This document shows positions 8,583 through 30,824 of a stretch of DNA of 64,000 bases, piece after piece; within the stretch, counting starts at the first letter, position 1; each line of letters begins with the position of its first letter. Location: positions 143,112 to 207,111 of the IMG/VR virus record IMGVR_UViG_3300033146_002768. One strand, written 5' to 3'. The notes beneath the pieces were generated by a model, which saw only the letters and a program-made list of their open reading frames with translations, was not told the origin of the DNA and did not search any database. The position numbers and the translations under genes were made by a program.

Positions 8583-9413
8583 TCACTTTATATCGTTTAT
8601 TAATAAACCAAAGTTGTGAAAACATGCTTGACAAATGTTATTATTTTTTTCACAAGGAAATATATTATGTGTAAATAATATTTTTAAAACTAATTTATGT
8701 AAAGGCGAAGAATCAATATCATTTGTATTACCAGCACAACAACGATATATTTTATTTTCAATTAAATCAAGCCTTGGTACTAATATAGATGAATTACAAA
8801 TTCTTTGTGATTTTTTAATTAAATCTTTATTTAAAATATTACTAAAATGTTTTATTTTATCTTTACTATTTGAATCGATATTTAAATTAATAATTTCATA
8901 TAATAATTTAATGTCACTTATAGTTAATATTAAATCTTTATCATTTCCCACATAAAATTTAATAGTAAAATTAATATGATCATTTGTTTTTATGAATGAT
9001 TTTATATATTTTAAATTTTGTTTATGAACTATAATAATATAATCAATCGGAATATCATTATCTTTTATTACATTAATTTTTGTTGGTTCATTTATTTCTG
9101 AAATTACATGGTATGAAATATTATTAATATATGATCTAAATATTTCATGATAATTATTTTCTAAAAATGTACCATTTGTTGCTATCTCACAAGGATGATT
9201 TAATTCATTGAATATTTCTTGTAAATAATCTTTAGATAATAAACCTGGTTCACCTCCAGATAATGAGATTAATATATTAGGATTATATGTTTGAAGTAAA
9301 TTAATATAGTTTTTAACTTTTTCAATTGGAGATGTTTTATTATCAACATTATCGCAATAGTTACATGACCAGTTACATTTATTTGTTATTTTTAATACTA
9401 CTGATTCTATCAT
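8583..9413 (-). CDS. Radical SAM protein (paralog family A)
   Basis: CNWSCNYC, SGGEPG, TNG motifs. Confidence 0.9.
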   Translation of the reverse strand: MIESVVLKITNKCNWSCNYCDNVDNKTSPIEKVKNYINLLQTYNPNILISLSGGEPGLLSKDYLQEIFNELNHPCEIATNGTFLENNYHEIFRSYINNISYHVISEINEPTKINVIKDNDIPIDYIIIVHKQNLKYIKSFIKTNDHINFTIKFYVGNDKDLILTISDIKLLYEIINLNIDSNSKDKIKHFSNILNKDLIKKSQRICNSSILVPRLDLIENKIYRCCAGNTNDIDSSPLHKLVLKILFTHNIFPCEKNNNICQACFHNFGLLINDIK

Positions 9414-10246
9414 ATTTTAGACCTACAATTCCATGCTCCATTGTAACATGAAGAGCATATTATATTAGTTTTATTTTTATGTGTAAACAAATCGTTTTTA
9501 ATAAGTAATCTTAAATTTATTTTGTTAAATGTTATATTATCAATTGTATTAGAAAGTCCAGCACAACATCTAAATATCTTTTCTTTTATTAAATCTAATC
9601 TAGGCATGTATGATATAGTATTGCAATATTCTTGAGCTTTAATAATATTATTATAATTATCTATATTACTAAAGTATTTTATTCTTTCTTTATAATCATC
9701 AATAATATTCATATCACATATACCTTCATAATATAAAGTTGCAATACGTGATTGTGTTAATACATAATTTTGATCTGCTCCAATATAAAATCTCGGACTA
9801 AATTGTATATGACTATTTCTTTGAATGAATGGAATCACTTGGTTTATGTTTCTATTATGGATGACAAAAATATATTGTATTGGGAGATCAGTTTCTATAT
9901 TATCATATATTGTATTGTCATCATTTATCTCAGGAGTTACATGATACCAAAATTCTTTTAGTTTCGATTTAAATAAGTTATGATAATCTTTTTCAAAAAA
10001 TGTACCATTCGTTGCTATCTCACAAGGATTATTAATATGTTTAAATACTTGTTCTAAATACTTCTCAGATAACATACCTGGCTCACCACCTGATAATGAA
10101 ATTGTTATATATGGATTTAATGATTGTAATGAATTAATACATTCTATTAATTTATCAAGTTCTACATTTTGAGAATCAACATTATCACAATATGAACAAT
10201 CCCAATTACATTGATTTGTTACTTTTATTACCATAGTATTAATCAT
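9410..10246 (-). CDS. Radical SAM protein (family A, tandem duplicate of 8583..9413)
   Basis: CNWDCSYC, SGGEPG, EIATNGTF, PRLDLI...RCCAG shared with its neighbour. Start moved to the ATGA overlap at 10246. Confidence 0.9.
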   Translation of the reverse strand: MINTMVIKVTNQCNWDCSYCDNVDSQNVELDKLIECINSLQSLNPYITISLSGGEPGMLSEKYLEQVFKHINNPCEIATNGTFFEKDYHNLFKSKLKEFWYHVTPEINDDNTIYDNIETDLPIQYIFVIHNRNINQVIPFIQRNSHIQFSPRFYIGADQNYVLTQSRIATLYYEGICDMNIIDDYKERIKYFSNIDNYNNIIKAQEYCNTISYMPRLDLIKEKIFRCCAGLSNTIDNITFNKINLRLLIKNDLFTHKNKTNIICSSCYNGAWNCRSKI

Positions 10247-11265
10247 AAATTTTCTTGTCTCCATTCATAAATTTTTGTTAGTGTAATAGGATCAGCATTA
10301 GTAATATCCTTAGAGCTAACATCTTCATAACTATTACAGACTTTACAATGTTCATGATCAGATAAATTTAAATAAGCATTAGAACTATATACTTCATCTA
10401 ATTTCTGAATATTTAAATTTCCTATCTTTGTTTTAAAATATATATCACCAGAGCATCCACACCCTATCATAATACCTGTTGATGAAATAAAATTTTTAGT
10501 AAGAAAGTATTGACACATCTTAGGTCTTTCTTTAACATTAGCAGTTAATTTAAAATTTTCAGACTCTAATACTTCATTACTAATTAATGATCTACGACTA
10601 CAAAAATCATCTCTTGGAAATAACATAGAATTTGTCATTCGACTAATCTGAAATAATAACTTATAAGTTTCAGATGTTATTAGTAATTTATGATGTATTT
10701 TTGTTTTTGTATAAATAGGAATGTTTAAGTTTATATTTATATTATTATCAATTAAATATTTTAAATTATTTTTGAAATTTAAATAAAAGGTTTTTGTACT
10801 TCTGGCAAACCTTTCAAATTCAGAAAAATGTAAACCATAACAACTAATGCCTAACCAACTTATTTTTTTTAATGACAAGAGTTTATCTAAATATTTATTA
10901 TTATCAATTGTTAAATTTGTATAAAAATGATATCCATCAACATTGGGATGATTTTCTAATATATCTAATTTCTCAATAAATGTTTTATCTAAAAAAACTT
11001 CGCCATTCATTGGAGTTAATGAAAAATAAGTAAATCCAAAATCACAACATTGATTCAATATATCTTTAAACATATCAATTGACATACTCATTGACTTCTC
11101 TGTTTTCTTTTCACCTCTTTCTTTTTGATTACAATGGATACAATTTAAATTACATATATTGATAGATTCGATTGCAATATAGTTATAAAACATATTTCCA
11201 TTTTTAGTAAATGATTTATATCTAATATTCTTTTCTATATTAGGAAATTTTGAGAATGTAATCAT
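10243..11265 (-). CDS. Radical SAM protein with Twitch/SPASM-like C-terminus
   Basis: CNLNCIHC, MNGEVFL, C-terminal C...GCGC...IGNL...C..C. Confidence 0.85.
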   Translation of the reverse strand: MITFSKFPNIEKNIRYKSFTKNGNMFYNYIAIESINICNLNCIHCNQKERGEKKTEKSMSMSIDMFKDILNQCCDFGFTYFSLTPMNGEVFLDKTFIEKLDILENHPNVDGYHFYTNLTIDNNKYLDKLLSLKKISWLGISCYGLHFSEFERFARSTKTFYLNFKNNLKYLIDNNININLNIPIYTKTKIHHKLLITSETYKLLFQISRMTNSMLFPRDDFCSRRSLISNEVLESENFKLTANVKERPKMCQYFLTKNFISSTGIMIGCGCSGDIYFKTKIGNLNIQKLDEVYSSNAYLNLSDHEHCKVCNSYEDVSSKDITNADPITLTKIYEWRQENL

Positions 11266-12809
11266 TAGTCTTCCTTGTAGTAAGTATTTTTATTTATTAC
11301 TAATAAATCTATTTTATTATTATCTAACATTTCAAATGCATCTTCATACCAGTTAATAATTGTCTGTCCTTTTATATTAAAGCTTGTATTTAATAAACAA
11401 GGGATACCAGTTCTTTCTTTGAATTTTTTTAATAACTTATATATAAAAATATTATCTTTTGTAATTGTTTGGATTCGTGTTGTATTGTCTATATGTTTAA
11501 CTGCTTTAAAAAGATCAGTTTTATTATACCCCACAATATTCATATAAGGAAAATCTCCTTCTATATCAAAATATTTTGAAAGGTCATCTTTCAAAATCAT
11601 AATACCAAACGGTCTAAATTCTTCTCTATGTTTTACTCTTTTATTTAAAATATCTTTCATTTCTTTATTTCTTGGATCACATATTATAGATCTATTACCT
11701 AAAGATCTTGGTCCAATTTCTATTTCACCTTGAATTAAACCAACTATTTTTTTGTTAATTAATTCATCAATAAGTTTATCTAAGTTTAATGGTTCATTAG
11801 GTTTATTTGAATTTCCATTTAATTCTGGGCCAGTTATTGGAATAGAAATTTTATTCTTATAACAATTTAGTGCAGCACCTAAACATTGTCCAACATCACT
11901 TGGATAAGGAGTAAAATGATAATGTTCAAACATACCAGATTTTATTAATTTATAATTTAACATAACATTCAAAAAAGAACCTCCGGATAAACATATGTTA
12001 TTACTTAAGTATGAATATTTTTTAATTAAAAGAATAATCCTTTTAATCCATTCAACTTGAAATGTATAAGAAAAATCTTTTAAGTTTTTAACACGTTTAA
12101 CAATATAAGTATCAACTATATCGATTATTCTTTTATTTATTTTATCACCCATTATAAAAGGATTACTATTTAATATTAAATTAATTATATTTAAATATTT
12201 ATCATTATATTTTCCATAAGAACAATATGCCATAAATTTACCAGCTACATGTCCCTTATGATTAATCCCTTCAACATATTCTGGATTTATTTTTTCTAAA
12301 ACTTTAAATGATACTTTGGAAAAATGATTACCTAAAGGAAATTCAATTTTATCAATTTCTTTAATATTATTATCTTTACCATGAAAAATTCCACCATGAT
12401 TAAATTCTATTGAACCATCACTTCCTCCGTCTAAACTAATAATTAAAGAATCATTAAAATTGCTTGTATAGTATGAACTAGCTCCATGACATAAATGGTG
12501 AGAATAATATTTAACTTCTTTATATTTAATTTTTCCATTTAAAAAATATTTATCAAATAAATGTTTACTAAAAAATCTTTTTTCTTTTGCCATTAAATAA
12601 TTTGGAGAAACACAAATATAATCAAAATCATTTTCTACTTCTATTATTTTTTCAATGAATTTATTTATTATATCTTCTGTCCAATGTTTAACTTCAAAGT
12701 ATTTAATCTTAAAATATTTTTCTGCCTCAAAAAAATATTTGACTTTATTATCATTTATAATAACAAACCCACAATCATGAGGAACTAAATGTACGCCTAA
12801 TATTTTCAT
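11265..12809 (-). CDS. Carbamoyltransferase, CmcH/NodU/TobZ family (copy 1)
   Basis: HD, HHLCHGASSY, SLDGG, GKFMA, LSGGSFLNV, PYPSDVGQCLGA, EIGPRSLGNRSI, KHREEFRPF, NTSFN. Confidence 0.92.
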   Translation of the reverse strand: MKILGVHLVPHDCGFVIINDNKVKYFFEAEKYFKIKYFEVKHWTEDIINKFIEKIIEVENDFDYICVSPNYLMAKEKRFFSKHLFDKYFLNGKIKYKEVKYYSHHLCHGASSYYTSNFNDSLIISLDGGSDGSIEFNHGGIFHGKDNNIKEIDKIEFPLGNHFSKVSFKVLEKINPEYVEGINHKGHVAGKFMAYCSYGKYNDKYLNIINLILNSNPFIMGDKINKRIIDIVDTYIVKRVKNLKDFSYTFQVEWIKRIILLIKKYSYLSNNICLSGGSFLNVMLNYKLIKSGMFEHYHFTPYPSDVGQCLGAALNCYKNKISIPITGPELNGNSNKPNEPLNLDKLIDELINKKIVGLIQGEIEIGPRSLGNRSIICDPRNKEMKDILNKRVKHREEFRPFGIMILKDDLSKYFDIEGDFPYMNIVGYNKTDLFKAVKHIDNTTRIQTITKDNIFIYKLLKKFKERTGIPCLLNTSFNIKGQTIINWYEDAFEMLDNNKIDLLVINKNTYYKED

Positions 12810-13687
12810 ATATATCCTCGTTCTCTTATATTACACCAGTAACTATTAAAATATCTTAAACAATCATTACATCTTATACAACTCAAATCATTAGCCGCAG
12901 AAGGGAATAAAATAAAATTCATCATCTTTAGCATATTACTTTCATTCAATTTAGCTCTATCAGAATATGTCCAACTAATAGGACATCTTAATATCTCTTC
13001 ATTTACAAAATCAAGTGTGGGGTGTATTTGAGAATTACCACATGCTTGTCTATGTAATGATAATGTTTTTTCGCTTGAACTAAATGCTTTCTTTAACATA
13101 TCAAAGGTATCAGGTAATACATTATCTAACTTATAAACAGAATCATATAATTCTTTAAACTGAGATCTAGTTATTATATAATCTAAATCTCCATCAAACT
13201 CTCCCTTTTGTAAAAATGGAATTAAGTTAAATTTCATTAAAGGATATCTCTGACATTTATTTAAAACATCTTTATAATTCTTTGCATGAACTGGTTGAAA
13301 TATTTGTATTTTTTCATCGCAAATATCATGTGGTATATCTTCCTTAACTTCTATATTAGGATGATACCCAACCCAATCAATTTTATCATACCATCTATCA
13401 AAATAACCTTTATCAATAAATAGTCCATTAGTGTTAACTCTTATTTTATGACAATCACATACTTCTTCAAATATGTATTCAAGAATATCAATATCAACTA
13501 ATCCAGGTTCTCCGCCTGTTAATGTAAACACAGGAAATAGATCATCTCTACCATTAACCATTGGAAAATATTTTTCAATTAATGATTTATTAGCTTGTTT
13601 TGGATTTACTAATTGTCCTATATCACAATAGAAGCAATCCTTATCACATTCTTCAGTTAGAAATAAAACTAGTCTATGAGCTTTCAT
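12806..13687 (-). CDS. Radical SAM protein (family A-like)
   Basis: CDKDCFYCD, TGGEPGL, VNTNGLF. Confidence 0.88.
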   Translation of the reverse strand: MKAHRLVLFLTEECDKDCFYCDIGQLVNPKQANKSLIEKYFPMVNGRDDLFPVFTLTGGEPGLVDIDILEYIFEEVCDCHKIRVNTNGLFIDKGYFDRWYDKIDWVGYHPNIEVKEDIPHDICDEKIQIFQPVHAKNYKDVLNKCQRYPLMKFNLIPFLQKGEFDGDLDYIITRSQFKELYDSVYKLDNVLPDTFDMLKKAFSSSEKTLSLHRQACGNSQIHPTLDFVNEEILRCPISWTYSDRAKLNESNMLKMMNFILFPSAANDLSCIRCNDCLRYFNSYWCNIRERGYI

Positions 13688-14654
13688 TTATCCATCCTGG
13701 TATAAAATTAAATACTTTTATACACTTTTCTTTATTTGTTAATAAATCTAAATGACTCCAGAAAAATTTAGGTGTCGAATGTTCATATGCACAATGTTTT
13801 GAAGTGCATAAAATTTTATCTGTTTTATTTATTATATCTTTATATGAATAATCTAAATTATAATTTCTATTTCTTATACTAAAACAAGGATTTATAGAAC
13901 CATCAACTTCAATTAATAAACTTCTAGTATAGGCTAAACATATAAACCCTTTAAAATTTCTATTATAAATTCTTTTATGTTTTAAAATGTATTTATCATT
14001 TTTAAAATAAACACTCTTAATAAAATCAGTTCTTAATTCTACATCATCTTTTATATCAGGATCTATTTTAGTACTTTCATATAGATTATCTCTAACAGTT
14101 TTATATACTAATAAAAAATCTGAATCATCCTTAAAAATATCTTTCATTTTATTATACTCTGAAATACATTCTTTTGATTCAATCATAAATGCTAATTCTA
14201 TTGGGATATTTAAATCTCTTAATTGTTTACATTTATATATAAACTTATTAAAATTAATAAATTTTTTATGATAACTAACATACATATTAAAATCTATATC
14301 ATTCATTATATGAGCAAGTGTTTTATAAGTATGTAAATTAGCAGTAGCATTAGTTAGTAAACATAACGATGCTTTTTTAAATTTTAATACAGAGGATAAA
14401 TTTTTCATGAATGGTATAAAATAAGGATATATAGTAGGTTCACCACCTGTAATTAAAATATCTAATTCTATATTGTTATCAATATCTTCAATAAAATTTA
14501 AAAATTTATTAGTTATATCATAGTCGGTTTTAATTGAGTTATCTCTTATACCACAATAATCACATTTATAATTACAATTCAATGTAAGGTGATATGTTAT
14601 TCTTAACTTTTTAGATTCTGCATCACCATAGTATATTAAATTATCAGTTCTCAC
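13674..14654 (-). CDS. Radical SAM protein with Twitch-like C-terminus
   Basis: CNYKCDYC, TGGEPT, C.A....L.I..DG.I.PC, C....C. Confidence 0.88.
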   Translation of the reverse strand: MRTDNLIYYGDAESKKLRITYHLTLNCNYKCDYCGIRDNSIKTDYDITNKFLNFIEDIDNNIELDILITGGEPTIYPYFIPFMKNLSSVLKFKKASLCLLTNATANLHTYKTLAHIMNDIDFNMYVSYHKKFINFNKFIYKCKQLRDLNIPIELAFMIESKECISEYNKMKDIFKDDSDFLLVYKTVRDNLYESTKIDPDIKDDVELRTDFIKSVYFKNDKYILKHKRIYNRNFKGFICLAYTRSLLIEVDGSINPCFSIRNRNYNLDYSYKDIINKTDKILCTSKHCAYEHSTPKFFWSHLDLLTNKEKCIKVFNFIPGWINESS

Positions 14655-14664
14655 AATATCTTCC

Positions 14665-15384
14665 TTAATATAAATTTAGAATAGGTTTTTCTTTTTTATA
14701 ATTTCCAAGAGCTTCTTTCCAAGTTTTAGATATATGATGTTTTGTTGTTATTACTTTATTCTTTTTAGAGTTATCTAATATGCCACAAAATTTACATATC
14801 TTTTTTTTCTGTTGTAATATAGTTGATTGATTAATATCTTTCATTCTTTTAATTCCTATATCAAATCCAAATACTCTATCAATTGTTGCAGCAACTCCAC
14901 AAACATAAAATCCATATCTATTAAATCCTAGTCCACAATCAATTTCATTTATACATATTTCTTTATAATTATTTTTGATTTTAGAATATTCATCGTTATC
15001 AACAGGCGCTTCAAAGAAATTAAAAAAAGGATCGGGTCCTAATTTCTTATTAGTATTTTCTAAAATAATATTTTTAGAACGATGTAATATATTTAATCTA
15101 CTTGATTCTTTTACTCCATTTGTTATAACTGTAATATTTGAAGATGTATCGTTTAACATTGTTATGATATATATTAAATCATTTCTCAATGTAGGTTCGC
15201 CACCCAATAAATTTATATTAGTCCATTTAAAATTTAAATCATACGTTTCAATAACAAACTTCTCTAATTGTTTTATTGACATCTCTTCATCACTCGGAGC
15301 TAAATCTTTACTACATGCTCTATTACAATTAAAGCAAGATAAATTACATTTTATTAATAATTCTATTTCAATATTAGTTAACAT
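14665..15384 (-). CDS. Radical SAM protein
   Basis: CNLSCFNCNR, LGGEPTL, ITNG, CGLG....GFYVC, C..C. Confidence 0.88.
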   Translation of the reverse strand: MLTNIEIELLIKCNLSCFNCNRACSKDLAPSDEEMSIKQLEKFVIETYDLNFKWTNINLLGGEPTLRNDLIYIITMLNDTSSNITVITNGVKESSRLNILHRSKNIILENTNKKLGPDPFFNFFEAPVDNDEYSKIKNNYKEICINEIDCGLGFNRYGFYVCGVAATIDRVFGFDIGIKRMKDINQSTILQQKKKICKFCGILDNSKKNKVITTKHHISKTWKEALGNYKKEKPILNLY

Positions 15385-15387
15385 TAT

Positions 15388-16188
15388 TTATACCTTTATA
15401 TTATTAATAAAATGAAAGCAGGTGTTACATACATCACTATTATCAAATTTTATTTTTAACATGTCATTTAAATTATTGATTGTTAAATCTATACTTGCTG
15501 AATTTGTATGACTACAAACACATTTTTTAATTTTACCATAAACTAAATCTATAGAAAAATCATTACTTTTCTCTCGACAAATTTTTCGATATTTTTCTTG
15601 TTTATTCCATATCATTAAAATTTTAAAAAATAAGTTTTTAGAATAAATAGTCGCATTTTTATTTTTTATAATTTTATAAATAGTTTGATAATCATCATGA
15701 TTCAATTCAAATTTAGATTGTTTTAATTTAGAATCATATGGAGATATTTCAAAAGTTATATCTTTATATCTATTTAAAAAATCATCTAACAAATAAATAT
15801 TTTGTTTATGAACTGGAAAATGATAATTTATATTTTTAATATCATATGGATTAAATTCTTCATTTATTTCAGATACTGGATGACACATTATAGTGTTGAT
15901 GTATTCTTTATATTTCTTATAATATCTTTGAATAAATAATCCATTTGTATTAACATGTATATTTTTAGTTTGTAATATTTCAAATATATAATCTAAAATA
16001 GTTTCACTTAATAATCCTATTTCTCCACCAGTTAAAACAACTTTATCTATACTAGATTTATCTCTAATAATTGGTAGGTATTTTTTTAAATATATTAACG
16101 GAGGTTTATTGCGTTTCTTTAAATTTCCTATATCACAATATTTACATTTTCTATTACATTGTTCAGTTAAGAAAAGTGTTAGTTTCAT
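15388..16188 (-). CDS. Radical SAM protein (family A-like)
   Basis: CNRKCKYCD, TGGEIGLL, VNTNGLF. Confidence 0.88.
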   Translation of the reverse strand: MKLTLFLTEQCNRKCKYCDIGNLKKRNKPPLIYLKKYLPIIRDKSSIDKVVLTGGEIGLLSETILDYIFEILQTKNIHVNTNGLFIQRYYKKYKEYINTIMCHPVSEINEEFNPYDIKNINYHFPVHKQNIYLLDDFLNRYKDITFEISPYDSKLKQSKFELNHDDYQTIYKIIKNKNATIYSKNLFFKILMIWNKQEKYRKICREKSNDFSIDLVYGKIKKCVCSHTNSASIDLTINNLNDMLKIKFDNSDVCNTCFHFINNIKV

Positions 16189-22145: not shown

Positions 22146-22163
22146 TATAGTTCCTTATATTCT

Positions 22164-23063: not shown

Positions 23064-23087
23064 TTATATTCTGGTGAAACCTTCTTT

Positions 23088-23681
23088 TTAATTAAATGCT
23101 GAATAGAATGTAGCTAACCTTGCTTCAATATCTTCAACAGTTGTTAGTAATATAACTTCATCTGAGAAAATTTTGTAAATATCATAAGTTGATTTTCTCT
23201 CATCTAATTTATCTCTAAGATCTAAATAAATATCTAAAGCATCAATTATTGCTTGATCCCCTGCATTTATTATTTCAAGATATTTAGCTTCTCTATTTTC
23301 ATCAGTAATTACATAACCAAGATCAATCAATCTATTATTTATAATAGTAAATCCATAAAAATCAAACATTGAAAGACTACCAACTCTGTTTGATGTAAAT
23401 TGTCTAGCTTGATTTCTTGCACCAAGAGCTGCTGCAACAATTGCATCTTCTGCTGCCTGAATTATTAGATCACCTTCGACTAATGGATTGATTAAATTTT
23501 TAGCAAAGAATACTGATTGATTAGCTTCTAAAGAAGTTTCAATTGCGTTATAGCATTCAATTGATGAAATTTCATATAGTCTAACTCCGCCAAATTCAAA
23601 GATAGTTTCTTCATCCCCTTGAAATACAGATACTATTTGGTAATTAACACCAACATCATTAATACCAGCTATAAGTTTCAT
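23088..23681 (-). CDS. Hypothetical protein heading the glycan-enzyme block
   Basis: 197 aa ORF with GGAGG RBS and late-promoter-like motif at 23778. Confidence 0.6.
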   Translation of the reverse strand: MKLIAGINDVGVNYQIVSVFQGDEETIFEFGGVRLYEISSIECYNAIETSLEANQSVFFAKNLINPLVEGDLIIQAAEDAIVAAALGARNQARQFTSNRVGSLSMFDFYGFTIINNRLIDLGYVITDENREAKYLEIINAGDQAIIDALDIYLDLRDKLDERKSTYDIYKIFSDEVILLTTVEDIEARLATFYSAFN

Positions 23682-23765
23682 AACTACGCCTCCGTTTATT
23701 ATTTTTAGAATTAATTTGATTATTTAAATGAATTTTTTTACATTAGTTAATAACTAACACTTTCT

Positions 23766-23785
23766 TATTTATAAATATGTTCTAT
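23766..23785 (-). promoter_or_regulatory. Putative late promoter
   Basis: TAGAACATATTTATAAATA upstream of 23681. Confidence 0.6.
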
Positions 23786-23808
23786 ATTTTTTAATAATCT
23801 AACCTTAA

Positions 23809-24921
23809 TTATTTTCTATCAAAAACTCCATTTATTTTTCCCCAAATAGGAGACAAACCTTCATGATATGATTCTTTTGGATTTGACATTCTCCATTTAT
23901 AAAGAGGACCGCTTACACAATGAGTCTCTGTTGAATTATTTAAATATTTTGTATTAACAACCATACTTCCATATTTAATCGCTTCTTCAACAATTGTAGT
24001 TCTCCACATAGGTAATATGGCTGTTACTATATTACCTGTATCAGGATTATCTGTTTTATCAAATCTTAAAATTGATAAACACTGTTGATGAAATCTAGCA
24101 TTATCTAAATAATAACTTTTATCTAAATCTCTTGATTTACAAATAAATTTTATTAATTGAGATAACATTGGAAAATATGTTCCATGCAACTGATCTGAAA
24201 TTCCTCTATACCTAATTTCTTGAGGTTTATATTCTCTACATACTTTATCAAGTTTTAACATTGGCTCTGTAGTATCACAACTTAATAATACTCCATAAGA
24301 ATATTCTTGATTAGGTTTTAAAGTTATAATATTTTCAGTTATATCTCTAATGTATTTAGGATCAGTTTCACTATCTACACTTAACGCCCAATTAACTTGA
24401 TTACTATCTGGAAATTTATTTATATAAGTATGATCTAATAATTTAATACCATTAGTATAAATATGTATTTTATTATTTGTATTTTCACAAATCCAATGAA
24501 CTAATTTATCAAGATCTTTAAACATAGTTGGTTCTCCACCAACCATTCTAATCACTGGATGATATCCATCATAATGATATTCTTTATATGGTCTTGAACC
24601 ATAACCTCTTAGATCATTAGGAACAAATTCTTTTATATTACTTATAAAATCTTCAAGGGTATTGTTACCAGGATGTTTAACAATCAAATCTTTTTCATAA
24701 CAATATTTACAATTTTTATTACAATCATTTGTCATATGAAAAAATGATGTGAAGTAACCTCCTGCTGTTTCTTCGGGATGAAATTGTTTTTCCCAAATAC
24801 TAAAATCTTCTTCTAATAATACTTTATCATCTTCTGATACTAACCATACTCCATTCATATCATAAACAATTTTCTTTTCTATTATATCTCTAAATTTATT
24901 TAAACCATGTATATTAGTCAT
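23809..24921 (-). CDS. Radical SAM protein
   Basis: CNKNCKYC, VGGEPT, YTNG. Confidence 0.88.
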   Translation of the reverse strand: MTNIHGLNKFRDIIEKKIVYDMNGVWLVSEDDKVLLEEDFSIWEKQFHPEETAGGYFTSFFHMTNDCNKNCKYCYEKDLIVKHPGNNTLEDFISNIKEFVPNDLRGYGSRPYKEYHYDGYHPVIRMVGGEPTMFKDLDKLVHWICENTNNKIHIYTNGIKLLDHTYINKFPDSNQVNWALSVDSETDPKYIRDITENIITLKPNQEYSYGVLLSCDTTEPMLKLDKVCREYKPQEIRYRGISDQLHGTYFPMLSQLIKFICKSRDLDKSYYLDNARFHQQCLSILRFDKTDNPDTGNIVTAILPMWRTTIVEEAIKYGSMVVNTKYLNNSTETHCVSGPLYKWRMSNPKESYHEGLSPIWGKINGVFDRK

Positions 24922-25951
24922 TACTAATTTCTCCTGTATGAAAATTCTGATTATAATAATATGTTATTGGACATATATCATAAATACTATTTTTAATATT
25001 ATCTATTAAATATCGTTGAATTAAAAACAACTTAGACTGGTATATATCGTCTATGCTGGTGTATAATTCTGGATCTATATTAAGGTCATCATTAAATTTA
25101 TATGGCGCAAAAAACGGACATTGGACTATTGTATTGTTATAAGTATAGATAGCCTTTAATGGAAATCTATGACAACCATTAACATGATAAGATACATCAA
25201 CATTATCTAATTTTATAATATCTTGAAATTCAGAGTATGTTTTTTGTATTGTATTAAAATTATTACAAGGGTTTTCTAATTCTTCATAATCCTTTAATAA
25301 TTGCAAGACATAAGTTAAATTTAATGGTTTATACTTTTCCATTATATATAATAATTCATCTCTATTTTTTATTACAGTATTAGCTATAACTTTAATTCCT
25401 ATGTCTTGTAATCGTTTTATATTTTTATAATGCTCTTCAAAGAAACCTTTATCAAAATGATAGTAATCTATTGAAGTATAAAAAGTAAATTCCTTACCAA
25501 CAGCATCACATATATCTTTACATAAAATAAAAAACATTAAATTATTTCCAATGTTTTTTAAGTTAGAATTAATTCTAAAACTTAATTTCATTTTATGTCT
25601 TGTATAAATATTTAAACAACGATCTAAAAATTTTAATAAATCATTTGCTGGCAATAAGGTTAACTCACCACAATTGAAATGAAGTTTTAAAGAATCATGA
25701 CCGTCATTTTTAAATTCAATTAAATACTTTTCTAAAAAAATATAAAATTTTTCATAATCAAATTCTTCATCTTGATTTAAATATTCTTTGAAGCAACAAT
25801 GTTCGCAATTCATATTACATTTACTAGTTAAATTCACCCCAAGGTTAGGAGTGAATTTAACTATATTATTTTCTTGTAATATAATTTTATTACACCAACT
25901 TTGAAAATCATTGCTATTCTCTATATGTCTAAACAATTCTTTTATATGCAT
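24914..25951 (-). CDS. Radical SAM protein
   Basis: CNMNCEHCC, NCGELT, INSN, C-terminal CHRF...CPF. Confidence 0.85.
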   Translation of the reverse strand: MHIKELFRHIENSNDFQSWCNKIILQENNIVKFTPNLGVNLTSKCNMNCEHCCFKEYLNQDEEFDYEKFYIFLEKYLIEFKNDGHDSLKLHFNCGELTLLPANDLLKFLDRCLNIYTRHKMKLSFRINSNLKNIGNNLMFFILCKDICDAVGKEFTFYTSIDYYHFDKGFFEEHYKNIKRLQDIGIKVIANTVIKNRDELLYIMEKYKPLNLTYVLQLLKDYEELENPCNNFNTIQKTYSEFQDIIKLDNVDVSYHVNGCHRFPLKAIYTYNNTIVQCPFFAPYKFNDDLNIDPELYTSIDDIYQSKLFLIQRYLIDNIKNSIYDICPITYYYNQNFHTGEISND

Positions 25952-25958
25952 ATGTTTC

Positions 25959-26519
25959 CTATAGATATTCTATATCATATTTTAATCTAATATCACTTTT
26001 AGCTGAATAGTTACAGTTACATGTGCAAGCATAATTACAATTACATGTACAAGCATAATTACATTGACATGTACATGCATAATTACATTGACATGTACAT
26101 GCATAATTACAATTACATGTACAAGAATAATTACAATCACAAACACATATTGCTTCTATAACATTAACTCTATCTCTCATTGCATTATATTGTTGAGCTT
26201 CAATTTCATCATCTGTACCAGTATCAGTATCAGCTAAATATGACGGCCATGTCCATGCAGTAGCAGCATTGATGCCATCACGAAGTCTTCTAACATGTAA
26301 ACTACTAGCATTAGTTGCAGTAGTAACAGCACCTGGATCTGCTGGCCAGCTAGCACTTCTTCTTGTTAATTCTGCAGCAATAGCTGTTCTTAATTCATTA
26401 TGATAAATAGCTTTAATTGAGTTAGTTGTTAATGGATCGTCGCTCCAAGTAGTAGGAGTTATACCTGGTATATACCCTCCATGTGCTGGGCAACTATTTG
26501 TGTGTCCTCCGCAAGCCAT
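25959..26519 (-). CDS. Cys-rich repeat fibre-like protein A (candidate radical SAM substrate)
   Basis: Six C-x-C-x-C-N-Y units, three internal W..D...H/Y..(L/M)R..(I/V) repeats, and terminal SDIRLKYDI. Confidence 0.85.
   Translation of the reverse strand: MACGGHTNSCPAHGGYIPGITPTTWSDDPLTTNSIKAIYHNELRTAIAAELTRRSASWPADPGAVTTATNASSLHVRRLRDGINAATAWTWPSYLADTDTGTDDEIEAQQYNAMRDRVNVIEAICVCDCNYSCTCNCNYACTCQCNYACTCQCNYACTCNCNYACTCNCNYSAKSDIRLKYDIEYL
26007..26147 (-). repeat. 24-bp-period coding tandem repeat encoding (x)CTCxCNY
   Basis: Plus-strand units such as gcataattacaattacatgtacaa repeated without spacers. Confidence 0.95.
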
Positions 26520-26531
26520 AGTATTATCTCC

Positions 26532-27107
26532 TTATTTAGTGCCTGAATAGTTACAATCACATGTACATGAATAATTACAATTACATGTGCAATAGTTACA
26601 ATTACAAGTACAATAGTTACAATTACAAGTACAAGCATAATTACAATCACAAGTACAATTATAATTACATTGACATGTACAAGCATAATTACAATCACAA
26701 ACACATTCAGTTTCCATTGTATTGACTTGCGATCTAATAGCATTATATTGATCTACTTGAATTAGATCTCCAACTTCTGTATCTGGATCGTCTAAATAAG
26801 ATGGCCATGTCCATGCTTTAGCAGCATTTACTCCATTTCTTAATTGTCTTACATGATTACTTTCAATTATATTTGTAGTAGCTACTGTTCCTGGGTCAGT
26901 TGGCCAACTTTGACTACGTCTAATTAATTCATCATCAATAGCATTTCTAAGTTCGTTATGATGTGTTGTTATAAACTTAGTAGATGTGGTTAACGGTTGT
27001 GTAGTCCACACAGTAGGAGATTCTGGGTATATTCCCTGAACATTAGATAGACAAGTGTTACTATGGTCTTCGCATGAAGATGGTGTTGTATGTCCTGTAC
27101 ATGCCAT
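26532..27107 (-). CDS. Cys-rich repeat fibre-like protein B (paralog of A)
   Basis: Seven C-x-C-x-C-N-Y units; shares HNELR.AI..EL.RRS.SWP.DPG and AWTWPSYL.D with A. Confidence 0.85.
   Translation of the reverse strand: MACTGHTTPSSCEDHSNTCLSNVQGIYPESPTVWTTQPLTTSTKFITTHHNELRNAIDDELIRRSQSWPTDPGTVATTNIIESNHVRQLRNGVNAAKAWTWPSYLDDPDTEVGDLIQVDQYNAIRSQVNTMETECVCDCNYACTCQCNYNCTCDCNYACTCNCNYCTCNCNYCTCNCNYSCTCDCNYSGTK
26547..26705 (-). repeat. 21/24-bp-period coding tandem repeat encoding CTCxCNY
   Basis: Seven units, directly readable. Confidence 0.95.
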
Positions 27108-27110
27108 AAT

Positions 27111-28259: not shown

Positions 28260-28269
28260 TATTCACCTT

Positions 28270-29265
28270 TTAGAATTGTCTAAATTCATGCTTTGTTTCT
28301 TTTTCATCATATGTAATTCCTGTTGTAGGAGATAAATATGAATTACCTATAAAATTATCTTTTTCACATATTCTGCATATATCACATACATGTCCACAAA
28401 TAGGAATTTTATATCTTTCAAAAATAGATTTTAAATATGGAAGATTTTTTTCTTTAATTGTTTTGCCTACATGTGATTGTTTTAAAGTATCATCAAGTTC
28501 TTGATAAGCATATCCAATAGTAATCCTACTTAAATAATCACTATTAAATTTTTCTAATATATAAATAGTATCGTCAATTACTTTATCATAATTACCAGAA
28601 TGAACTGTATAACTAATTTTAAAAGGAATTTTATATTTAGATAATGTTTTAATAGATTCTTCAACTATATCTTTACTATTAGTTCCATCTGGAAATTTTC
28701 TTTTGAATTGTCCAGAACCATCATAACTTATTTCCAAATTAAAACTTATATTATAGTGTTTACCATATTCTATTAAACTTTTTAAAGCATTTAATTTGAT
28801 AGAATTAAATAAGGTAGCATTAGTTATTAAACTTAATCCAAATCCTTTTGCTTTACCTTGAGAAACTAATTCTATTGTTTTAGCTATTGTATATTGTATT
28901 AAATCAAATTTTAAAAAGGGTTCTCCGCCCATAATAACAATAGTTGATATACAGTCTTTTTCTCTTACGCAAATTTCATTTAAAAAATCATCAATCATTT
29001 TAGGAGTACAATTAGCTTGATCTTCAAGACCATTCTTACTACTAGATTCATAGCAATATGTACATCTTAAATTACAATCAGTATTTAAATAAATAACATT
29101 AGTTCTTTGACTATTATTCATTTTAATTTTATTTGTTGGCAGATTGATACAAGTGTCAAATTCACAAGAGTTACATTCACCATTACATTTTTGAGATTCA
29201 TTCTTTGATAATATATCACTCATATCATTAAAGAATGAATCTATATGTTTATCTATTTGATACAT
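28270..29265 (-). CDS. Radical SAM protein with Cys-rich N-terminal extension
   Basis: CNLRCTYC, MGGEPFL, ITNA; N-terminal CNGECNSCEFDTC; C-terminal C...CD.C..C. Confidence 0.88.
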   Translation of the reverse strand: MYQIDKHIDSFFNDMSDILSKNESQKCNGECNSCEFDTCINLPTNKIKMNNSQRTNVIYLNTDCNLRCTYCYESSSKNGLEDQANCTPKMIDDFLNEICVREKDCISTIVIMGGEPFLKFDLIQYTIAKTIELVSQGKAKGFGLSLITNATLFNSIKLNALKSLIEYGKHYNISFNLEISYDGSGQFKRKFPDGTNSKDIVEESIKTLSKYKIPFKISYTVHSGNYDKVIDDTIYILEKFNSDYLSRITIGYAYQELDDTLKQSHVGKTIKEKNLPYLKSIFERYKIPICGHVCDICRICEKDNFIGNSYLSPTTGITYDEKETKHEFRQF

Positions 29266-29693
29266 TAGTTTCCAATACTTTGTCTAATTTTATCTACTAA
29301 AGATGTAATTTCATCATCAATGTTTTCTTGTACTATTGGCGGTGTAGTTCCATCTGGAATATTTGAATGTCCATGACAATTAAATGCCGGGTCTTCATTG
29401 TTTTCTATATTAGTAACTGGACGTTTAAATAATTCTGAGGCTTCTTGAACAGGGTGATTAGAAACTGGGTGTTTAAATAGTTCTGAGGATTCTTGAATAG
29501 GTTGACTAAAAATTTCTGGTTCATTACATTTACAATTGTCATCTTCTAATAATTTCAATACTTTATCACTTAATTGCAAAGCTTCAAAACTAACTTCATC
29601 ATTAATTTCTTTCATTGCATGTGTGATTTTTAAAAGACCTTTAGCACAATTAAAAATAATTTCATTTTGTTCTGGTGTATTATTACAACTCAT
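29265..29693 (-). CDS. Hypothetical protein with short internal duplication
   Basis: PIQESSELFKHPVSN / PVQEASELFKRPVTN. Confidence 0.6.
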   Translation of the reverse strand: MSCNNTPEQNEIIFNCAKGLLKITHAMKEINDEVSFEALQLSDKVLKLLEDDNCKCNEPEIFSQPIQESSELFKHPVSNHPVQEASELFKRPVTNIENNEDPAFNCHGHSNIPDGTTPPIVQENIDDEITSLVDKIRQSIGN

Positions 29694-29708
29694 TTTCGTT
29701 TCTCCTTC

Positions 29709-30824
29709 TTAACCTACATTTTTTATTGAATTAATTAATGTTTCTTTAAACATTTTATTTTCTTTTAGTTCTTTGGTAATTCTCATTGTATTTTTATAAG
29801 TAATTTTTAATATCTTACATAAATTATCAATCGGTTCTGCATACTCTTCTGGTGATGATGAATTTTTTAATTGACTATTCATACACCCACCATTACAGTA
29901 TTTATATAATTCACATTCTAAACATTTTTTAAATGTCTTAGGATTTATTAGATTTGGATTTCTAAGTAATTGAATTTCTTTAGTAAATTCTTGATTAAAT
30001 GAATTTCCTATTTTCTTTTCTTTACAGCTACCAAATCTTGCACATGGATATATATCTCCATTAGGCATAAACCCAGCTCCACCAGTTCCAGCAAAACAAC
30101 CAAAAGGTCTTTTACCAAAACTCTTACCAAATAAAAGGTCTAAAGTATATAGTTGAAAGAATCCAACATTAGCATTAATGCCTTCGTTATAATATTTGAT
30201 TACTTGGTTAGCTAATAAATGACATTCAATTTCATAATTAGCAACATCATAATCTGTCCATATATCATCTCGAACTAATGTAAAATCAGGGTTGTTGACA
30301 TTTAATTCTTCAACAAACCATTTAAAATTATCAACCATTGTAGGAACACAATCAGGTGATACCATTACTTTACACCCACCACCACGTCCAAAGAAATATG
30401 ATTTTAATGGTTCAGTTAAATATAAATCTAAACTAGAACCACCATGTTTCAATTTACGATTTTTTTCATTCCACAATCCATCAAATGATAAAGACAATGC
30501 AATCTGATTATCATCAATGTATTGTCTTTTATAATCATCTTGTAATACTAAACCATTTGTCATTGCTATAATAAATTTACAATGAGAATCATTTTTTAAA
30601 ATTGGAATTATATATTCAATAAGCTCCCAATTTAATAATGGTTCACCACCAAACAATGCAGCAGTATATTCATGTTGTCCATAAAAGTCCATTATCTTTG
30701 GGAGCATCTTAAAATGTTTATCAAATATTTCGTTTGTCATATTATTCGGTTGTTGATTAATATAACAATATTCACAAGCTAAATTACAATCTTCAGTCGT
30801 TACTATCTGAAATTCAAATCCCAT
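29709..30824 (-). CDS. Radical SAM/SPASM (anSME-like) maturase
   Basis: CNLACEYC, FGGEPLLN, SFDG, full SPASM-like CFAG...G.IYPC...CLECELYKYCNGGC...C. Confidence 0.92.
   Translation of the reverse strand: MGFEFQIVTTEDCNLACEYCYINQQPNNMTNEIFDKHFKMLPKIMDFYGQHEYTAALFGGEPLLNWELIEYIIPILKNDSHCKFIIAMTNGLVLQDDYKRQYIDDNQIALSLSFDGLWNEKNRKLKHGGSSLDLYLTEPLKSYFFGRGGGCKVMVSPDCVPTMVDNFKWFVEELNVNNPDFTLVRDDIWTDYDVANYEIECHLLANQVIKYYNEGINANVGFFQLYTLDLLFGKSFGKRPFGCFAGTGGAGFMPNGDIYPCARFGSCKEKKIGNSFNQEFTKEIQLLRNPNLINPKTFKKCLECELYKYCNGGCMNSQLKNSSSPEEYAEPIDNLCKILKITYKNTMRITKELKENKMFKETLINSIKNVG

Follow-up and report, generated by a model that had tools for sequence, protein, structure and literature searches.

We find that a very divergent, 207-kb T4-like jumbo phage carries, among its late virion genes, three radical-SAM (rSAM) enzymes that almost always sit beside a cysteine-repeat, fibre-type protein and, by inference from sequence, probably staple it with covalent sulfur bridges. 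We found no description of such chemistry acting on a virus particle. The DNA studied (the window) is a stretch of 64,000 nucleotides, positions 143,112 to 207,111 of IMG/VR record IMGVR_UViG_3300033146_002768. A preliminary description, made from the sequence alone, had noted in it a co-directional block of about 22 kb with 12 rSAM ORFs, two carbamoyltransferases, four GT-like ORFs, a NodB deacetylase, a methyltransferase, an SGNH protein and two paralogous Cys-repeat proteins, and had read the whole as a RiPP-like assembly line that builds a crosslinked, glycosylated virion appendage rather than a free peptide. The observation itself is confirmed. The interpretation is supported only in part, as the 22 kb is not one uniform assembly line: a conserved core that recurs in about 25 viral lineages is combined with a lineage-specific set of accessory genes. 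The features are collected in Table 1.

Table 1. Features of the island and its surroundings (positions in the window; handles of the form L030 denote related viral loci).
Position	Strand	Feature	Support and remarks
51678..53129		gp23 capsid gene	Preceded by the late-promoter-like motif (53184-53198)
32270..32486	-	Two perfect copies of the late-promoter-like motif AGAACATATTATAAA (32270-32284 and 32472-32486)	At the head of the co-directional block
31371..32195	-	Fibre-type structural ORF "f" (274 aa)	In L030 its N-terminal region matches the start of a 537-aa ORF that ends in the 30835-like domain; no Pfam or PHROG hit
30835..31359	-	"F" domain protein	Homologous to the extreme C-terminal module (always C-terminal) of 199-2007-aa proteins in relatives; the two scanned (856 and 2007 aa) are tail-fibre proteins (phrog_19602 tail fiber and phrog_22593)
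29709..30824	-	rSAM A, radical SAM/SPASM enzyme, no N-terminal RRE	PapB model 140 bits (cutoff 340), SCIFF 92, SPASM domain TIGR04085 45.6 (cutoff 27); closest PDB entry 5wgg/5why; CX3CX2C, GGEP and 7 SPASM Cys invariant in 20 orthologues
29265..29693	-	Small helical ORF "s"	Poorly conserved; variable middle often carries C-x-G-H; no RRE/PqqD signal
28270..29265	-	rSAM B, radical SAM enzyme	Invariant C-terminal CX3CX2CX2C cluster (not SPASM); PapB 64 bits, CefB 55 bits
27111..28259	-	rSAM C, radical SAM/SPASM-type enzyme	Component most tightly linked to the Cys-repeat gene; PapB 81 bits over the full length; 7 invariant C-terminal Cys; CP220 orthologue gp136
26532..27107	-	Cys-repeat fibre-type protein R1 (191 aa)	N-terminal CxxH motifs, a 110-aa core and 7 repeat units of C-T-C-x-C-N-Y
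25959..26519	-	Cys-repeat fibre-type protein R2 (186 aa)	54% identical to R1; ends in SDIRLKYDIEYL, the first strand of an S74 chaperone
23809..25951	-	Two further rSAM ORFs (24914-25951 and 23809-24921)	Inserted between the Cys-repeat genes and Z; not part of the conserved core; 23809 shared only with the L007/L008/L042 lineage
23088..23681	-	"Z" protein (197 aa), conserved module member	phrog_25260; present in 42/51 rSAM-C loci; preceded by a variant of the promoter motif
22164..23063	-	299-aa ORF	Family present in 9/51 related loci
21321..22145	-	"G" protein, conserved module member; 18398/19318/21321 family (weak GT-B-like predicted fold)	Present in 33/51 rSAM-C loci and directly after Z in 23; hhalign to the 18398 family gives prob 99.3% (A3 contains 21321 itself, which inflates the score)
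20752..21324	-	SAM-dependent methyltransferase, lineage-specific	Pfam Methyltransf_24
20205..20777	-	Polysaccharide-deacetylase-like ORF	phrog_26430, E 4e-14; no Pfam hit; homologous to CP220 gp156; syntenic ORFs of similar size (184 and 186 aa) in L042 and L043 have faint or weak Polysacc_deac_1 hits
18398..20208	-	Two paralogous ORFs (19318-20208 and 18398-19321)	Weak GT-B-like predicted fold
16944..18401	-	O-carbamoyltransferase of the NodU/CmcH/TobZ type	Both Pfam domains
16185..16835	-	DUF6071 protein (preliminarily described as SGNH)	Pfam DUF6071 only
12806..16188	-	Four rSAM ORFs: 15388, 14665, 13674 and 12806	15388 and 12806, small paralogue group; 14665, MoaA-like N-terminus only; 13674, weak STM4011-like
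11265..12809	-	Second O-carbamoyltransferase	Both Pfam domains; 31% identical to 16944
8583..11265	-	Three rSAM ORFs: 10243, 9410 and 8583	10243, sub-threshold SPASM-like C-terminus; 9410 and 8583, small paralogue group, 47% identical to each other
7155..8168	-	C1 peptidase	

All genes from 660 to 33125 lie on the minus strand. Within the island, gene junctions are overlaps or gaps of at most 24 nt, except for 108 nt before 16185 and 127 nt before 23088. Each of the 12 rSAM ORFs (named here, like other ORFs, by start position) has a CxxxCxxC motif near its N-terminus; the motif occurs in 12 of 25 island ORFs and in 0 of 45 ORFs outside (Fisher p=5e-7). Pfam Radical_SAM scores above the gathering threshold for nine of them, is sub-threshold for 12806 and 14665, and is absent for 24914, which has only weak NCBIfam hits. 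The two carbamoyltransferases match their Pfam domains with E values of 1e-23 to 1e-55, and their closest solved structures are NovN, GdmN and TobZ. The four ORFs that had been called GT-like (18398, 19318, 21321 and 22164) have no sequence-level support as such. The first three form one family, whose AF2 model gives weak GT-B matches (E 0.009-0.15, TM 0.3-0.45).

The block also shares a promoter-like motif with the capsid gene, as the preliminary description had claimed. The motif, AGAACAWATWATAAA, has 9 hits against 0.62 expected, all on the coding strand; two lie upstream of 31371 and one upstream of gp23. The tail-fibre-type ORFs 31371 and 30835 flank the island upstream on the coding strand, and a papain-like peptidase, an M15 peptidase and a 718-aa fibre-like protein lie downstream. 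In the relative L042, the island runs straight into the portal, protease, scaffold and gp23 genes.

The conserved core consists, in order, of a tail-fibre-type gene, rSAM A, the small helical ORF, rSAM B, rSAM C, the Cys-repeat protein, the Z protein and the weakly GT-B-like ORF. The link between the enzymes and the Cys-repeat ORFs is real and conserved in both search directions. Starting from the Cys-repeat gene, orthologues of C, A and B lie within 5 kb in 21, 19 and 16 of about 25 dereplicated lineages, and three long metagenome contigs looked up from the protein side show the same order. Starting from the enzyme, 41 of 51 loci with a full-length rSAM C orthologue have an ORF with the Cys-repeat protein's core domain directly downstream, against 5 of 29 for weak partial rSAM hits. 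Routine absence of the Cys-repeat ORF from homologous rSAM arrays had been named beforehand as an outcome that would refute the reading, and it was not observed. There are exceptions, however. Three lineages show the repeat protein without nearby rSAMs: L021 has 10 kb on both sides, whereas L019/20 and L028/29 are cut off downstream.

The three core enzymes are the peptide-maturase-like members of the set. Their best NCBIfam hits are the PapB, SCIFF, CXXX-repeat and Cys-every-fifth families, the best matches being thioether-forming peptide maturases, and the closest solved structure is the SCIFF maturase CteB (5wgg). The matches to the ranthipeptide and SCIFF maturases extend over the rSAM core and SPASM region. 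The catalytic and auxiliary Cys are invariant across 14-23 orthologues. Nevertheless, all three score far below every curated family cutoff, and no RRE was detected in the enzymes or in the small ORF; the N-terminal RRE of CteB (residues 1-100) is missing. The substrates of the ranthipeptide and SCIFF maturases also have repeated Cys-Xn-Asp/Asn motifs, but here the putative substrate is a folded virion protein and no export or leader protease is present. The other nine rSAMs belong to small, non-RiPP-like or solitary families.

The Cys-repeat family is virus-restricted: a search of 185,579 species genomes returned only 2 short MAG contigs. Its core domain never occurs without a Cys repeat. Each C-T-C-x-C-N-Y unit holds two overlapping C-x-x-[N/D/Q] motifs. 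C1-x-x-[NDQE] and C3-x-x-[NDQE] are both present in 87% of 615 units, against a 14% background, and divergent repeat types keep N/D/Q/E at Cys+3 at 57-64%, against 27±3% when shuffled. This Cys(i)-Asn/Asp(i+3) spacing is the register of ranthionine-forming systems (CrpA/CrpC, PapB), and the same C-X-X-Q/D logic was shown experimentally for CrpA/CrpC of Methanococcus voltae (Dieter et al. 2026, PMC13692751). In that system, too, a SPASM rSAM enzyme with seven auxiliary-cluster Cys is encoded next to a 20-30 kDa protein with an N-terminal recognition region and C-terminal tandem Cys repeats; the product is a modified protein rather than a peptide, and a small second partner is present (CrpB there, ORF "s" here). 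The phage system differs in being viral, in its location in a tail-fibre/late module, in having three enzymes instead of one, in the lack of a detected RRE, in its repeat (7-8 residues with two overlapping CxxN motifs) and in the S74 chaperone remnants of the putative substrate. None of the three enzymes reaches the CrpC family model (TIGR04463, 37-42 bits against a cutoff of 525). A further precedent is QhpD/QhpC, from the maturation of the quinohemoprotein amine dehydrogenase gamma subunit, in which a SPASM enzyme makes Cys-to-Asp/Glu thioethers in a protein subunit that stays part of a larger assembly (cited as a precedent in PMC13692751). The weak hits to TIGR03906 (45 and 63 bits, cutoff 453) do not make the phage enzymes members of that family, and QhpC is a small enzyme subunit with three bridges, not a tandem-repeat fibre protein.

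The three enzymes could instead modify the Cys-repeat protein by other radical chemistry, such as sactionine (Cys to C-alpha) bridges, epimerisation, C-methylation, Cys-to-formylglycine conversion or Cys-Tyr/His cross-links, and each may do something different. In favor of this possibility, there are weaker NCBIfam hits to anaerobic sulfatase maturase, sactipeptide, cyclophane-forming and epimerase families, Tyr7 of the repeat is 96% conserved, N-terminal C-x-x-H motifs occur in 85 of 95 family members, and B lacks a SPASM domain. We consider it unlikely, though the least so of the alternatives. The best full-length matches for all three enzymes are to the ranthipeptide maturase PapB, with SCIFF also prominent for A and CefB for B, and the one feature shared by all repeat variants is Asn/Asp at Cys+3, the ranthionine register (PMC13692751).

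It is also conceivable, but unlikely, that the Cys repeat is a purely structural element that binds metals or forms disulfides, with the rSAMs acting on sugars, nucleotides or cofactors and co-localizing only because all are late genes. Alternating CxCxC would put three thiols on one face of a beta-strand, T4 fibre tips bind iron through HxH repeats, a few lineages lack nearby rSAMs, and the island is rich in sugar-type enzymes. Against this view, the linked enzymes are specifically the peptide-maturase-like SPASM types, they stay next to the Cys-repeat gene even where the sugar cassette differs or was not detected within the 6-kb flanks, and the intergenic gaps are 3-12 nt.

Several lines of evidence support a folded, fibre-type virion protein rather than a free peptide. 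Relatives of the Cys-repeat protein end in a Pfam-valid S74 domain, the intramolecular chaperone of endosialidases and tail fibres, which starts at the SDxRLK motif directly after the last CNY unit. The window's proteins keep at most the first strand of this domain (profile positions about 1-14), and in several relatives the rest is a separate downstream ORF. The upstream neighbors scanned in two relatives (L003, L019) are tail-fibre proteins. Finally, gene 3-9 of Campylobacter phage IBB_35, the Cys-repeat homologue, is in the published virion mass-spectrometry list, albeit with only 2.6% coverage, while the adjacent rSAM gene 3-5 is not. Release of a RiPP-type peptide (for example, a bacteriocin-like or signalling product), cut out by the nearby papain-like protease or by S74-type autocleavage, seems very unlikely. 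The layout does resemble a leader (N-terminus and core) followed by a C-terminal Cys-rich core region, a C1 peptidase is encoded nearby, and S74 domains self-cleave at the SD motif. However, a confidently folded 110-aa domain is always attached, S74 cleavage would remove only the chaperone, no transporter is present, and the C1 peptidase did not appear among the genes annotated in the five relatives' contexts examined.

Our preferred explanation, to which we assign a probability of roughly 0.55, is that the block is a late-expressed part of the virion-morphogenesis region and has two layers. The first is the conserved core (about 32.2 kb down to 21.3 kb), with A and C carrying two auxiliary clusters in their SPASM domains, B carrying one C-terminal Cys cluster, and one or more copies of the Cys-repeat protein. 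Most likely, the three enzymes would act on this protein in the cytoplasm before assembly, abstracting hydrogen from Asn/Asp (or Gln) side-chain carbons three residues after a Cys and forming Cys-S-to-carbon thioether (ranthionine-type) bridges. The product would be a covalently laddered rod that resists reduction and proteolysis; by analogy with the S74 chaperone of relatives, it would be trimeric and mounted on or beside a tail fibre. A point against this model is that the AF2 monomer model leaves the repeat at a pLDDT of about 40-50 and so does not define its geometry. The gene content, the conserved synteny, the intact catalytic motifs, the fibre context and the shared late-promoter-like motif were established here, and the presence of a cultured-phage homologue in virions comes from the literature. 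In contrast, the identity of the repeat protein as the substrate, the catalysis of thioether formation, trimerisation and any glycosylation are inferences. The second layer is an accessory cassette of nine more rSAMs, two O-carbamoyltransferases, the methyltransferase, the deacetylase-like ORF, the GT-B-like paralogues and DUF6071. It probably makes or tailors a sugar-type decoration of the same virion structure, but nothing beyond adjacency links it to the repeat protein. The carbamoyltransferases, the methyltransferase and DUF6071 occur in 0-1 of 51 related loci, and the "glycosylated" element of the preliminary description rests only on the weak GT-B-like fold.

Among the closest known systems are the group II Campylobacter phages (Firehammervirus CP220, CPt10, CP21, IBB_35), whose multiple rSAM genes were described by Timms et al. 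2010 (PMC2853527). The CP220/CPt10-group phages carry orthologues of rSAM C (34%, E 4e-72) and rSAM A (37%, E 1e-62), a 534-aa protein with the same 21-bp/7-aa CxCxCNY repeat ("Repetitive region x"), small-rSAM homologues and a deacetylase. Unlike in the window, the genes are dispersed, with C about 2 kb and A about 31 kb away, no B orthologue was detected, and the repeat protein has a different N-terminus. The published interpretation of these genes is metabolic ("boosting host metabolism"), and we found no paper linking the rSAMs to the repeat protein. For the present island, a role in metabolism, nucleotide metabolism or DNA hypermodification appears very unlikely. Campylobacter phages carry 7-deazaguanine DNA, and the small rSAMs have weak QueE, MoaA, NrdG and viperin-like hits, but those hits cover only the generic N-terminal rSAM core and lie far below cutoffs. 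Further, no TGT/DpdA-like or DNA-handling ORF was found in the island, the block carries the capsid-type promoter motif and sits in the structural module, and the SPASM enzymes are of the peptide type. Our proposal offers a first testable explanation for some of the rSAM genes in CP220 and CPt10, which have been unexplained since 2010.

Most of the island has a G+C content of 21-25%, rising to as much as 30% around the Cys-repeat genes, against about 30% elsewhere in the window. The window belongs to IMG/VR contig IMGVR_UViG_3300033146_002768 (207,111 bp), a very low-GC phage with a T4-type major capsid protein (Pfam Gp23, E 4e-33) and portal. The capsid protein is only 23-29% identical to that of its nearest cultured relatives, and no tRNA was found in the window. 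From 33125 down to 660 every gene lies on the minus strand, and the genes are tightly packed, with only two gaps over 100 nt. Just outside the island lie a papain-family C1 peptidase, an M15 peptidase and a protein with a response-regulator receiver domain; the first and last of these are unusual in phages. Further afield, a rightward block looks like an NAD salvage/ADP-ribose cluster that could counter NAD-depleting defences. The coordinates of the principal features are collected in the table below.

Coordinates of features in the window and in related viral loci (L-numbers are our handles for those loci; L001 is phage CP220)
Locus	Coordinates	Strand	Feature
window	660-33125	-	co-directional leftward genes
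window	5100-5975	-	protein with a response-regulator receiver domain, just downstream of the island
window	6440-6934	-	M15 peptidase, just downstream of the island
window	7155-8168	-	papain-family C1 peptidase, just downstream of the island
window	12664-60439 (nine sites; perfect copies at 32270, 32472, 51540 and 60425)	-	motif AGAACAwATwATAAA
window	25959-26519	-	Cys-repeat protein (186 aa)
window	25959-26000	-	first strand of S74, at the end of the 25959 protein
window	26532-27107	-	Cys-repeat protein (191 aa)
window	29265-29693	-	small ORF between rSAM A and rSAM B
window	32502-33125	-	ROS/MucR-type zinc-finger protein, just upstream of the leftward late block and next to the switch to the rightward block at about 33.15 kb
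window	34147-47210		rightward block encoding NADAR, an NAD-dependent DNA ligase, a PP2C phosphatase, NAPRTase, NAD synthase and a phosphoribosyltransferase-like ORF
window	50700-51527		DUF559/REase-like ORF (probably a homing-endonuclease type), immediately downstream of the major capsid gene, with its own copy of the promoter motif
window	51678-53129		T4-type major capsid protein
window	55711-56253		543-nt "gap" upstream of 54991, between the portal gene and 54991, holding two tandem small paralogous ORFs, each starting MAT..C..C and with a second C..C pair, like a zinc ribbon
window	56254-58149		portal
L003	10704-10994		split S74 chaperone
L004	10701-10976		split S74 chaperone
L010	10624-10905		split S74 chaperone
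L025	10492-10788		split S74 chaperone
L034	10568-10879		split S74 chaperone
L066	7775-8050		split S74 chaperone, overlapping the stop of the Cys-repeat ORF
L011	10001-11095		Cys-repeat protein of 364 aa
L012-L014	10001-11071		Cys-repeat protein of 356 aa
L001 (CP220)	14404-16008		gp140
L001 (CP220)	15007-15132		"Repetitive region x"

The observation in the preliminary description was confirmed. The twelve ORFs that it listed as radical SAM (rSAM) enzymes all carry CxxxCxxC near the N-terminus. Nine of them exceed the 29.5-bit gathering score of Pfam Radical_SAM (PF04055), two are sub-threshold, and one (24914) has no Pfam hit and only weak NCBIfam hits. The motif occurs in 12 of 25 island ORFs and in none of 45 ORFs elsewhere in the window (p = 5e-7). 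Both carbamoyltransferases are solid: the Carbam_trans_N domains score 82.7 and 157.3 bits and the Carbam_trans_C domains 182.3 and 185.5 bits, above their cutoffs, and the nearest PDB entries are the O-carbamoyltransferases NovN, GdmN and TobZ (E 1e-38 to 1e-49). The methyltransferase is likewise solid. The remaining labels were weaker. The ORF described as "SGNH" is DUF6071 and nothing more. The putative NodB-type polysaccharide deacetylase (20205) has no Pfam hit, to PF01522 or any other family, and is supported only by phrog_26430 (E 4e-14); syntenic ORFs of similar size in two related loci, L042 and L043, are faint or weak. The "GT-like" label has no sequence support, there being no Pfam, NCBIfam, PHROG or PDB sequence hit.

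The two Cys-repeat proteins are 54% identical, and both end in six or seven units of C-T-C-x-C-N-Y with an optional eighth residue. A single search found 606 relatives, all metagenome proteins of 150-300 aa. Two alignments of the family show four parts: a variable N-terminal run of C-x-x-H motifs (0-8 copies, often C-[TN]-G-H-T); a conserved core of about 110 aa; the Cys repeat (2-18 units in the aligned set, up to 28 in the viral loci); and, in 53 of 95 members, the tail SDxRLKxxIxY followed by a stop. The C-x-G-H motif recurs in the variable middle of the small ORF between rSAM A and rSAM B, and may mark a second modification or recognition site. The repeat copy number also appears to vary, because near-identical phages (L011 versus L012-L014) differ by exactly one 8-residue unit. 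AlphaFold places the core, which comprises three helices, at pLDDT above 90, but leaves the repeat at about 40-50. Foldseek searches with the confidently modelled core found no significant structural relative in the PDB (best E 0.66) or BFVD (best E 0.02). Searched alone against 1.84 billion representatives, the core retrieves only members of this same family. The family occurs in only two of 185,579 species genomes, both times on short MAG contigs that also carry the rSAM genes, and it is therefore virus-restricted. A tblastn search of the repeat protein against cultured phages found nothing, probably because of the low-complexity filter, whereas DNA blastn and PHROG searches did find the CP220 group.

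The tail SDxRLK is the start of the Peptidase_S74 intramolecular chaperone (PF13884) of endosialidases and tail fibres. Family members from other loci carry the complete domain above the Pfam threshold of 22 bits (24-41 bits in relatives, counting fused domains and split ORFs), with the fused domain starting at profile position 1 directly after the last C-N-Y. In several relatives the domain is split: the first 14 or so positions end the Cys-repeat ORF, and a separate ORF of 91-103 aa with its own ATG, within about 30 nt downstream, starts at profile position 15-16 and carries positions 15-58 plus a coiled coil. The split pieces were searched separately, without reading through any stop codon. 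The proteins of the window do not carry a complete domain: 25959 has only SDIRLKYDIEYL, 26532 has none, and no remainder exists anywhere in the 64 kb.

Other evidence places the family among fibre and virion genes. Upstream of the module, relatives have proteins ending in a domain like the 30835 product; the two scanned, of 856 and 2007 aa, hit long-tail-fibre and collagen-like tail-fibre PHROGs. In contig L042 the whole arrangement runs co-directionally into the portal, prohead protease, scaffold and gp23 genes. The motif AGAACAwATwATAAA, which ends in a T4-late-like TATAAA, occurs nine times in the window against 0.62 expected, always on the coding strand. Most of the sites lie upstream of genes (the capsid gene, 50700, 59462 and, twice before 31371, the head of the island), whereas three 1-mismatch sites fall inside ORFs. 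It is probably the late promoter of this phage group. Terminator and sigma-70 scans performed no better than chance, so the transcription units rest on this motif only. Finally, in Campylobacter phage IBB_35 the 534-aa protein with the same repeat (gene 3-9, 60,318 Da) is in the published list of virion proteins found by MS, although at 2.6% coverage, and the neighbouring rSAM (gene 3-5) is not in that list (PMC3322345 supplement).

Three long metagenome contigs show one gene order: rSAM A (about 368 aa), a small ORF, rSAM B, rSAM C (about 380 aa) and then the Cys-repeat gene. Across 33 IMG/VR loci, the metagenome contigs and two MAG contigs, which together represent about 25 dereplicated lineages, an orthologue of C lies within 5 kb of the repeat gene in 21, of A in 19 and of B in 16. 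Only three lineages have none, and two of those are cut off just downstream. The preliminary description had specified that its reading would fail if homologous rSAM arrays routinely lacked the Cys-repeat ORF, and we therefore searched in the opposite direction, with rSAM C. Of 51 loci with a full-length orthologue, a simple CxCxC pattern recovered a repeat ORF in only 23. However, the ORF directly downstream in the others proved to be the same family with different repeats, namely CICNSD-CACNNV-CACHND-CGCNY, (CHSN/CHSD)n and CTCNVD. An HMM of the core domain finds the family in 41 of the 51 loci, against 5 of 29 loci with only weak partial rSAM hits. The "Z" protein (23088 type) is present in 42 of the 51, and a 21321-type ORF in 33, directly after Z in 23. 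We found no correlation between the presence of rSAM B and the repeat period or the N-terminal CxxH count.

All three enzymes of the module keep CX3CX2C and a SAM-binding GGE(P) motif, with GGEP (GGE in B) conserved in at least 95% of their orthologues. A has the canonical seven-Cys signature of the SPASM subfamily, which includes CX2CX5CX3C and corresponds to two auxiliary 4Fe-4S clusters: C243, C261, C301-x2-C304-x5-C310-x3-C314 and C336 are invariant in 20 orthologues, and the protein scores 45.6 bits with TIGR04085 against a cutoff of 27. C has seven near-invariant C-terminal Cys (six invariant, C360 in 22 of 23) with the variant spacing CX2CX4CX2C, but no SPASM model appeared among its hits. 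B has only four C-terminal Cys, in an invariant CX3CX2CX2C, and so falls outside the subfamily. The best curated-family matches of the three are thioether-forming peptide maturases, but every score is far below its cutoff. For the PapB family of ranthipeptide maturases (NF047865, cutoff 340 bits), A scores 139.9, C 81.3 and B 63.9 bits; for the SCIFF maturases (TIGR03974, cutoff 425), A scores 91.6, C 39.5 and B 30.5; for the CrpC-type Cys-rich-protein maturases (TIGR04463, cutoff 525), A scores 41.7 and C 37.2. The CXXX-repeat, Cys-every-fifth and QhpD families also follow PapB. None of the three can thus be assigned to the PapB or SCIFF family, nor A or C to that of CrpC.

The module has one hallmark of a RiPP biosynthetic system but lacks two others. 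The putative precursor gene adjoins its maturase genes, with gaps of 3-12 nt in the window, and this arrangement is conserved in both search directions. On the other hand, no PqqD-like RiPP recognition element (RRE) was detected, at the level of sequence only. A and C have no N-terminal extension: their CX3CX2C begins at residue 13-17, alignments to the SCIFF model, a family with an N-terminal RRE of about 100 aa, start at about model position 100, and the nearest solved structure to A, the SCIFF maturase CteB, aligns from its residue 104, that is, without its RRE. Profile searches with the small ORF family against PDB and Pfam found nothing PqqD-like. Nor does the putative substrate resemble a short peptide released from a leader and exported, because it always keeps the 110-aa core domain, no transporter or conserved protease is present, and the IBB_35 homolog was found in virions.

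The spacing of the repeats suggests a particular chemistry. Within 615 repeat units, C1-x-x-[N/D/Q/E] holds in 94% and C3-x-x-[N/D/Q/E] in 93%; both hold in 87%, against 14% for Cys elsewhere in the island proteins. The divergent repeat types keep this one feature, with N/D/Q/E at +3 for 57-64% of their Cys, against 27 ± 3% in composition-matched shuffles. This is the register reported for CrpA (C-X-X-Q/D), a 28.8-kDa Cys-repeat protein in which the SPASM enzyme CrpC was shown to install ranthionine bridges (PMC13692751), and the Cys-Asp/Glu cross-links of PapB are a related case (PMC9413430). Our best explanation is therefore that a fibre-type virion protein undergoes enzymatic Cys-to-Asn/Asp thioether laddering. 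While the gene content and its conservation are observed directly, the chemistry is inferred throughout and none of it is shown here; the pairing of two SPASM enzymes with two overlapping CxxN motifs per unit is suggestive only.

The remainder of the island is less readily tied to this module. The four small rSAMs (8583, 9410, 12806 and 15388) are paralogs belonging to a rare family of 11 database hits, seen on the same kinds of contig and in the variable rSAM module of phage CPt10, whereas 10243, 13674, 14665, 23809 and 24914 are solitary. None of these nine looks like a peptide maturase, a viperin or QueE beyond the generic core. Readings of the small rSAMs as viperin, QueE, MoaA or NrdG were rejected because the hits cover only that core: those to prokaryotic viperin (pVip) or viperin models span about the first 100 of 257 positions, NF038283 scores are at most 49 bits against a cutoff of 180, and the best QueE (7-deazaguanine pathway) score is 32 bits against cutoffs of 206-260. 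ORFs 18398, 19318 and 21321 form one family, whose AF2 model (pTM 0.82) gives many hits to GT-B glycosyltransferases, but only weak ones (E 0.009-0.15, TM 0.3-0.45). The carbamoyltransferases, the methyltransferase and DUF6071 are found in 0-1 of the 51 related loci. Relatives carry other tailoring genes in the same position: a sulfotransferase, an epimerase/dehydratase, Kdo-type synthase and cytidylyltransferase, PIG-L, GT2 and transketolase. Thus, a variable cassette of the sugar-tailoring type habitually accompanies the module, but only the weakly GT-B-like ORF is conserved with it, and its target could be a virion protein, the host surface or a small molecule. Considered as a whole, the interpretation offered in the preliminary description is partly supported. 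It is borne out in proposing a RiPP-like maturation of a Cys-repeat fibre protein, but it over-reaches in treating all 12 rSAMs and the tailoring enzymes as one assembly line and in asserting glycosylation.

Campylobacter group II phages have been known since 2010 to carry 11-12 rSAM genes and one intragenic 21-bp repeat; the enzymes were interpreted as metabolic boosters, and the repeat was left unexplained (PMC2853527). The CP220/CPt10-group phages hold orthologs of rSAM C (E 4e-72, about 2 kb from the repeat gene) and of rSAM A (E 1e-62, about 31 kb away among baseplate, sugar and portal genes), as well as small-rSAM homologs and a deacetylase. In CP220 gp140, the six perfect CxCxCNY units are followed by a C-terminal 200 aa with scattered degenerate CxC(N/D)xN motifs, as if an older repeat array had decayed. 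The window therefore shows, in compact form, a system whose scattered remnants exist in cultured, tractable phages. SPASM-mediated cross-linking of Cys-repeat proteins is already known; what differs here is that the system is virus-encoded, has three enzymes and is, by inference, aimed at a virion fibre component. Validated cases of radical SAM/SPASM cross-linking of whole proteins are very few (QhpC, and CrpA in 2026). In the library searched, which is incomplete, we found no paper that links these enzymes to the repeat protein, and none that reports such a case in a virus or a virion component.

These facts raise a broader possibility, which we regard as somewhat less likely than not: that a widespread group of T4-like and jumbo phages, including the cultured Campylobacter Firehammerviruses, matures a tail-fibre-associated virion protein with RiPP-type radical chemistry. 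In this view, two SPASM enzymes and a third rSAM would write an interlocked ladder of Cys-Asn/Asp thioether bridges along a tandem repeat whose copy number varies between near-identical phages, and a variable tailoring cassette (carbamoyl, sulfo, methyl and sugar groups plus further rSAMs) would then diversify the same appendage. As far as our searches show, this would be the first enzymatically thioether-cross-linked virus structural protein.

The split S74 chaperone is an additional oddity that bears on how fibre-folding domains evolve. If the proposed maturation is confirmed, it would give a first testable explanation for at least some of the 11-12 rSAM genes of Campylobacter phages used in biocontrol, which have been unexplained since 2010, and it would define a new substrate family with no recognisable fold. 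Further, it would supply compact, RRE-less maturases and a programmable repeat scaffold for protein stapling. It would also show that phages use natural-product-style chemistry to build structural parts, and would represent a new way for them to harden or vary a host-contact organelle.
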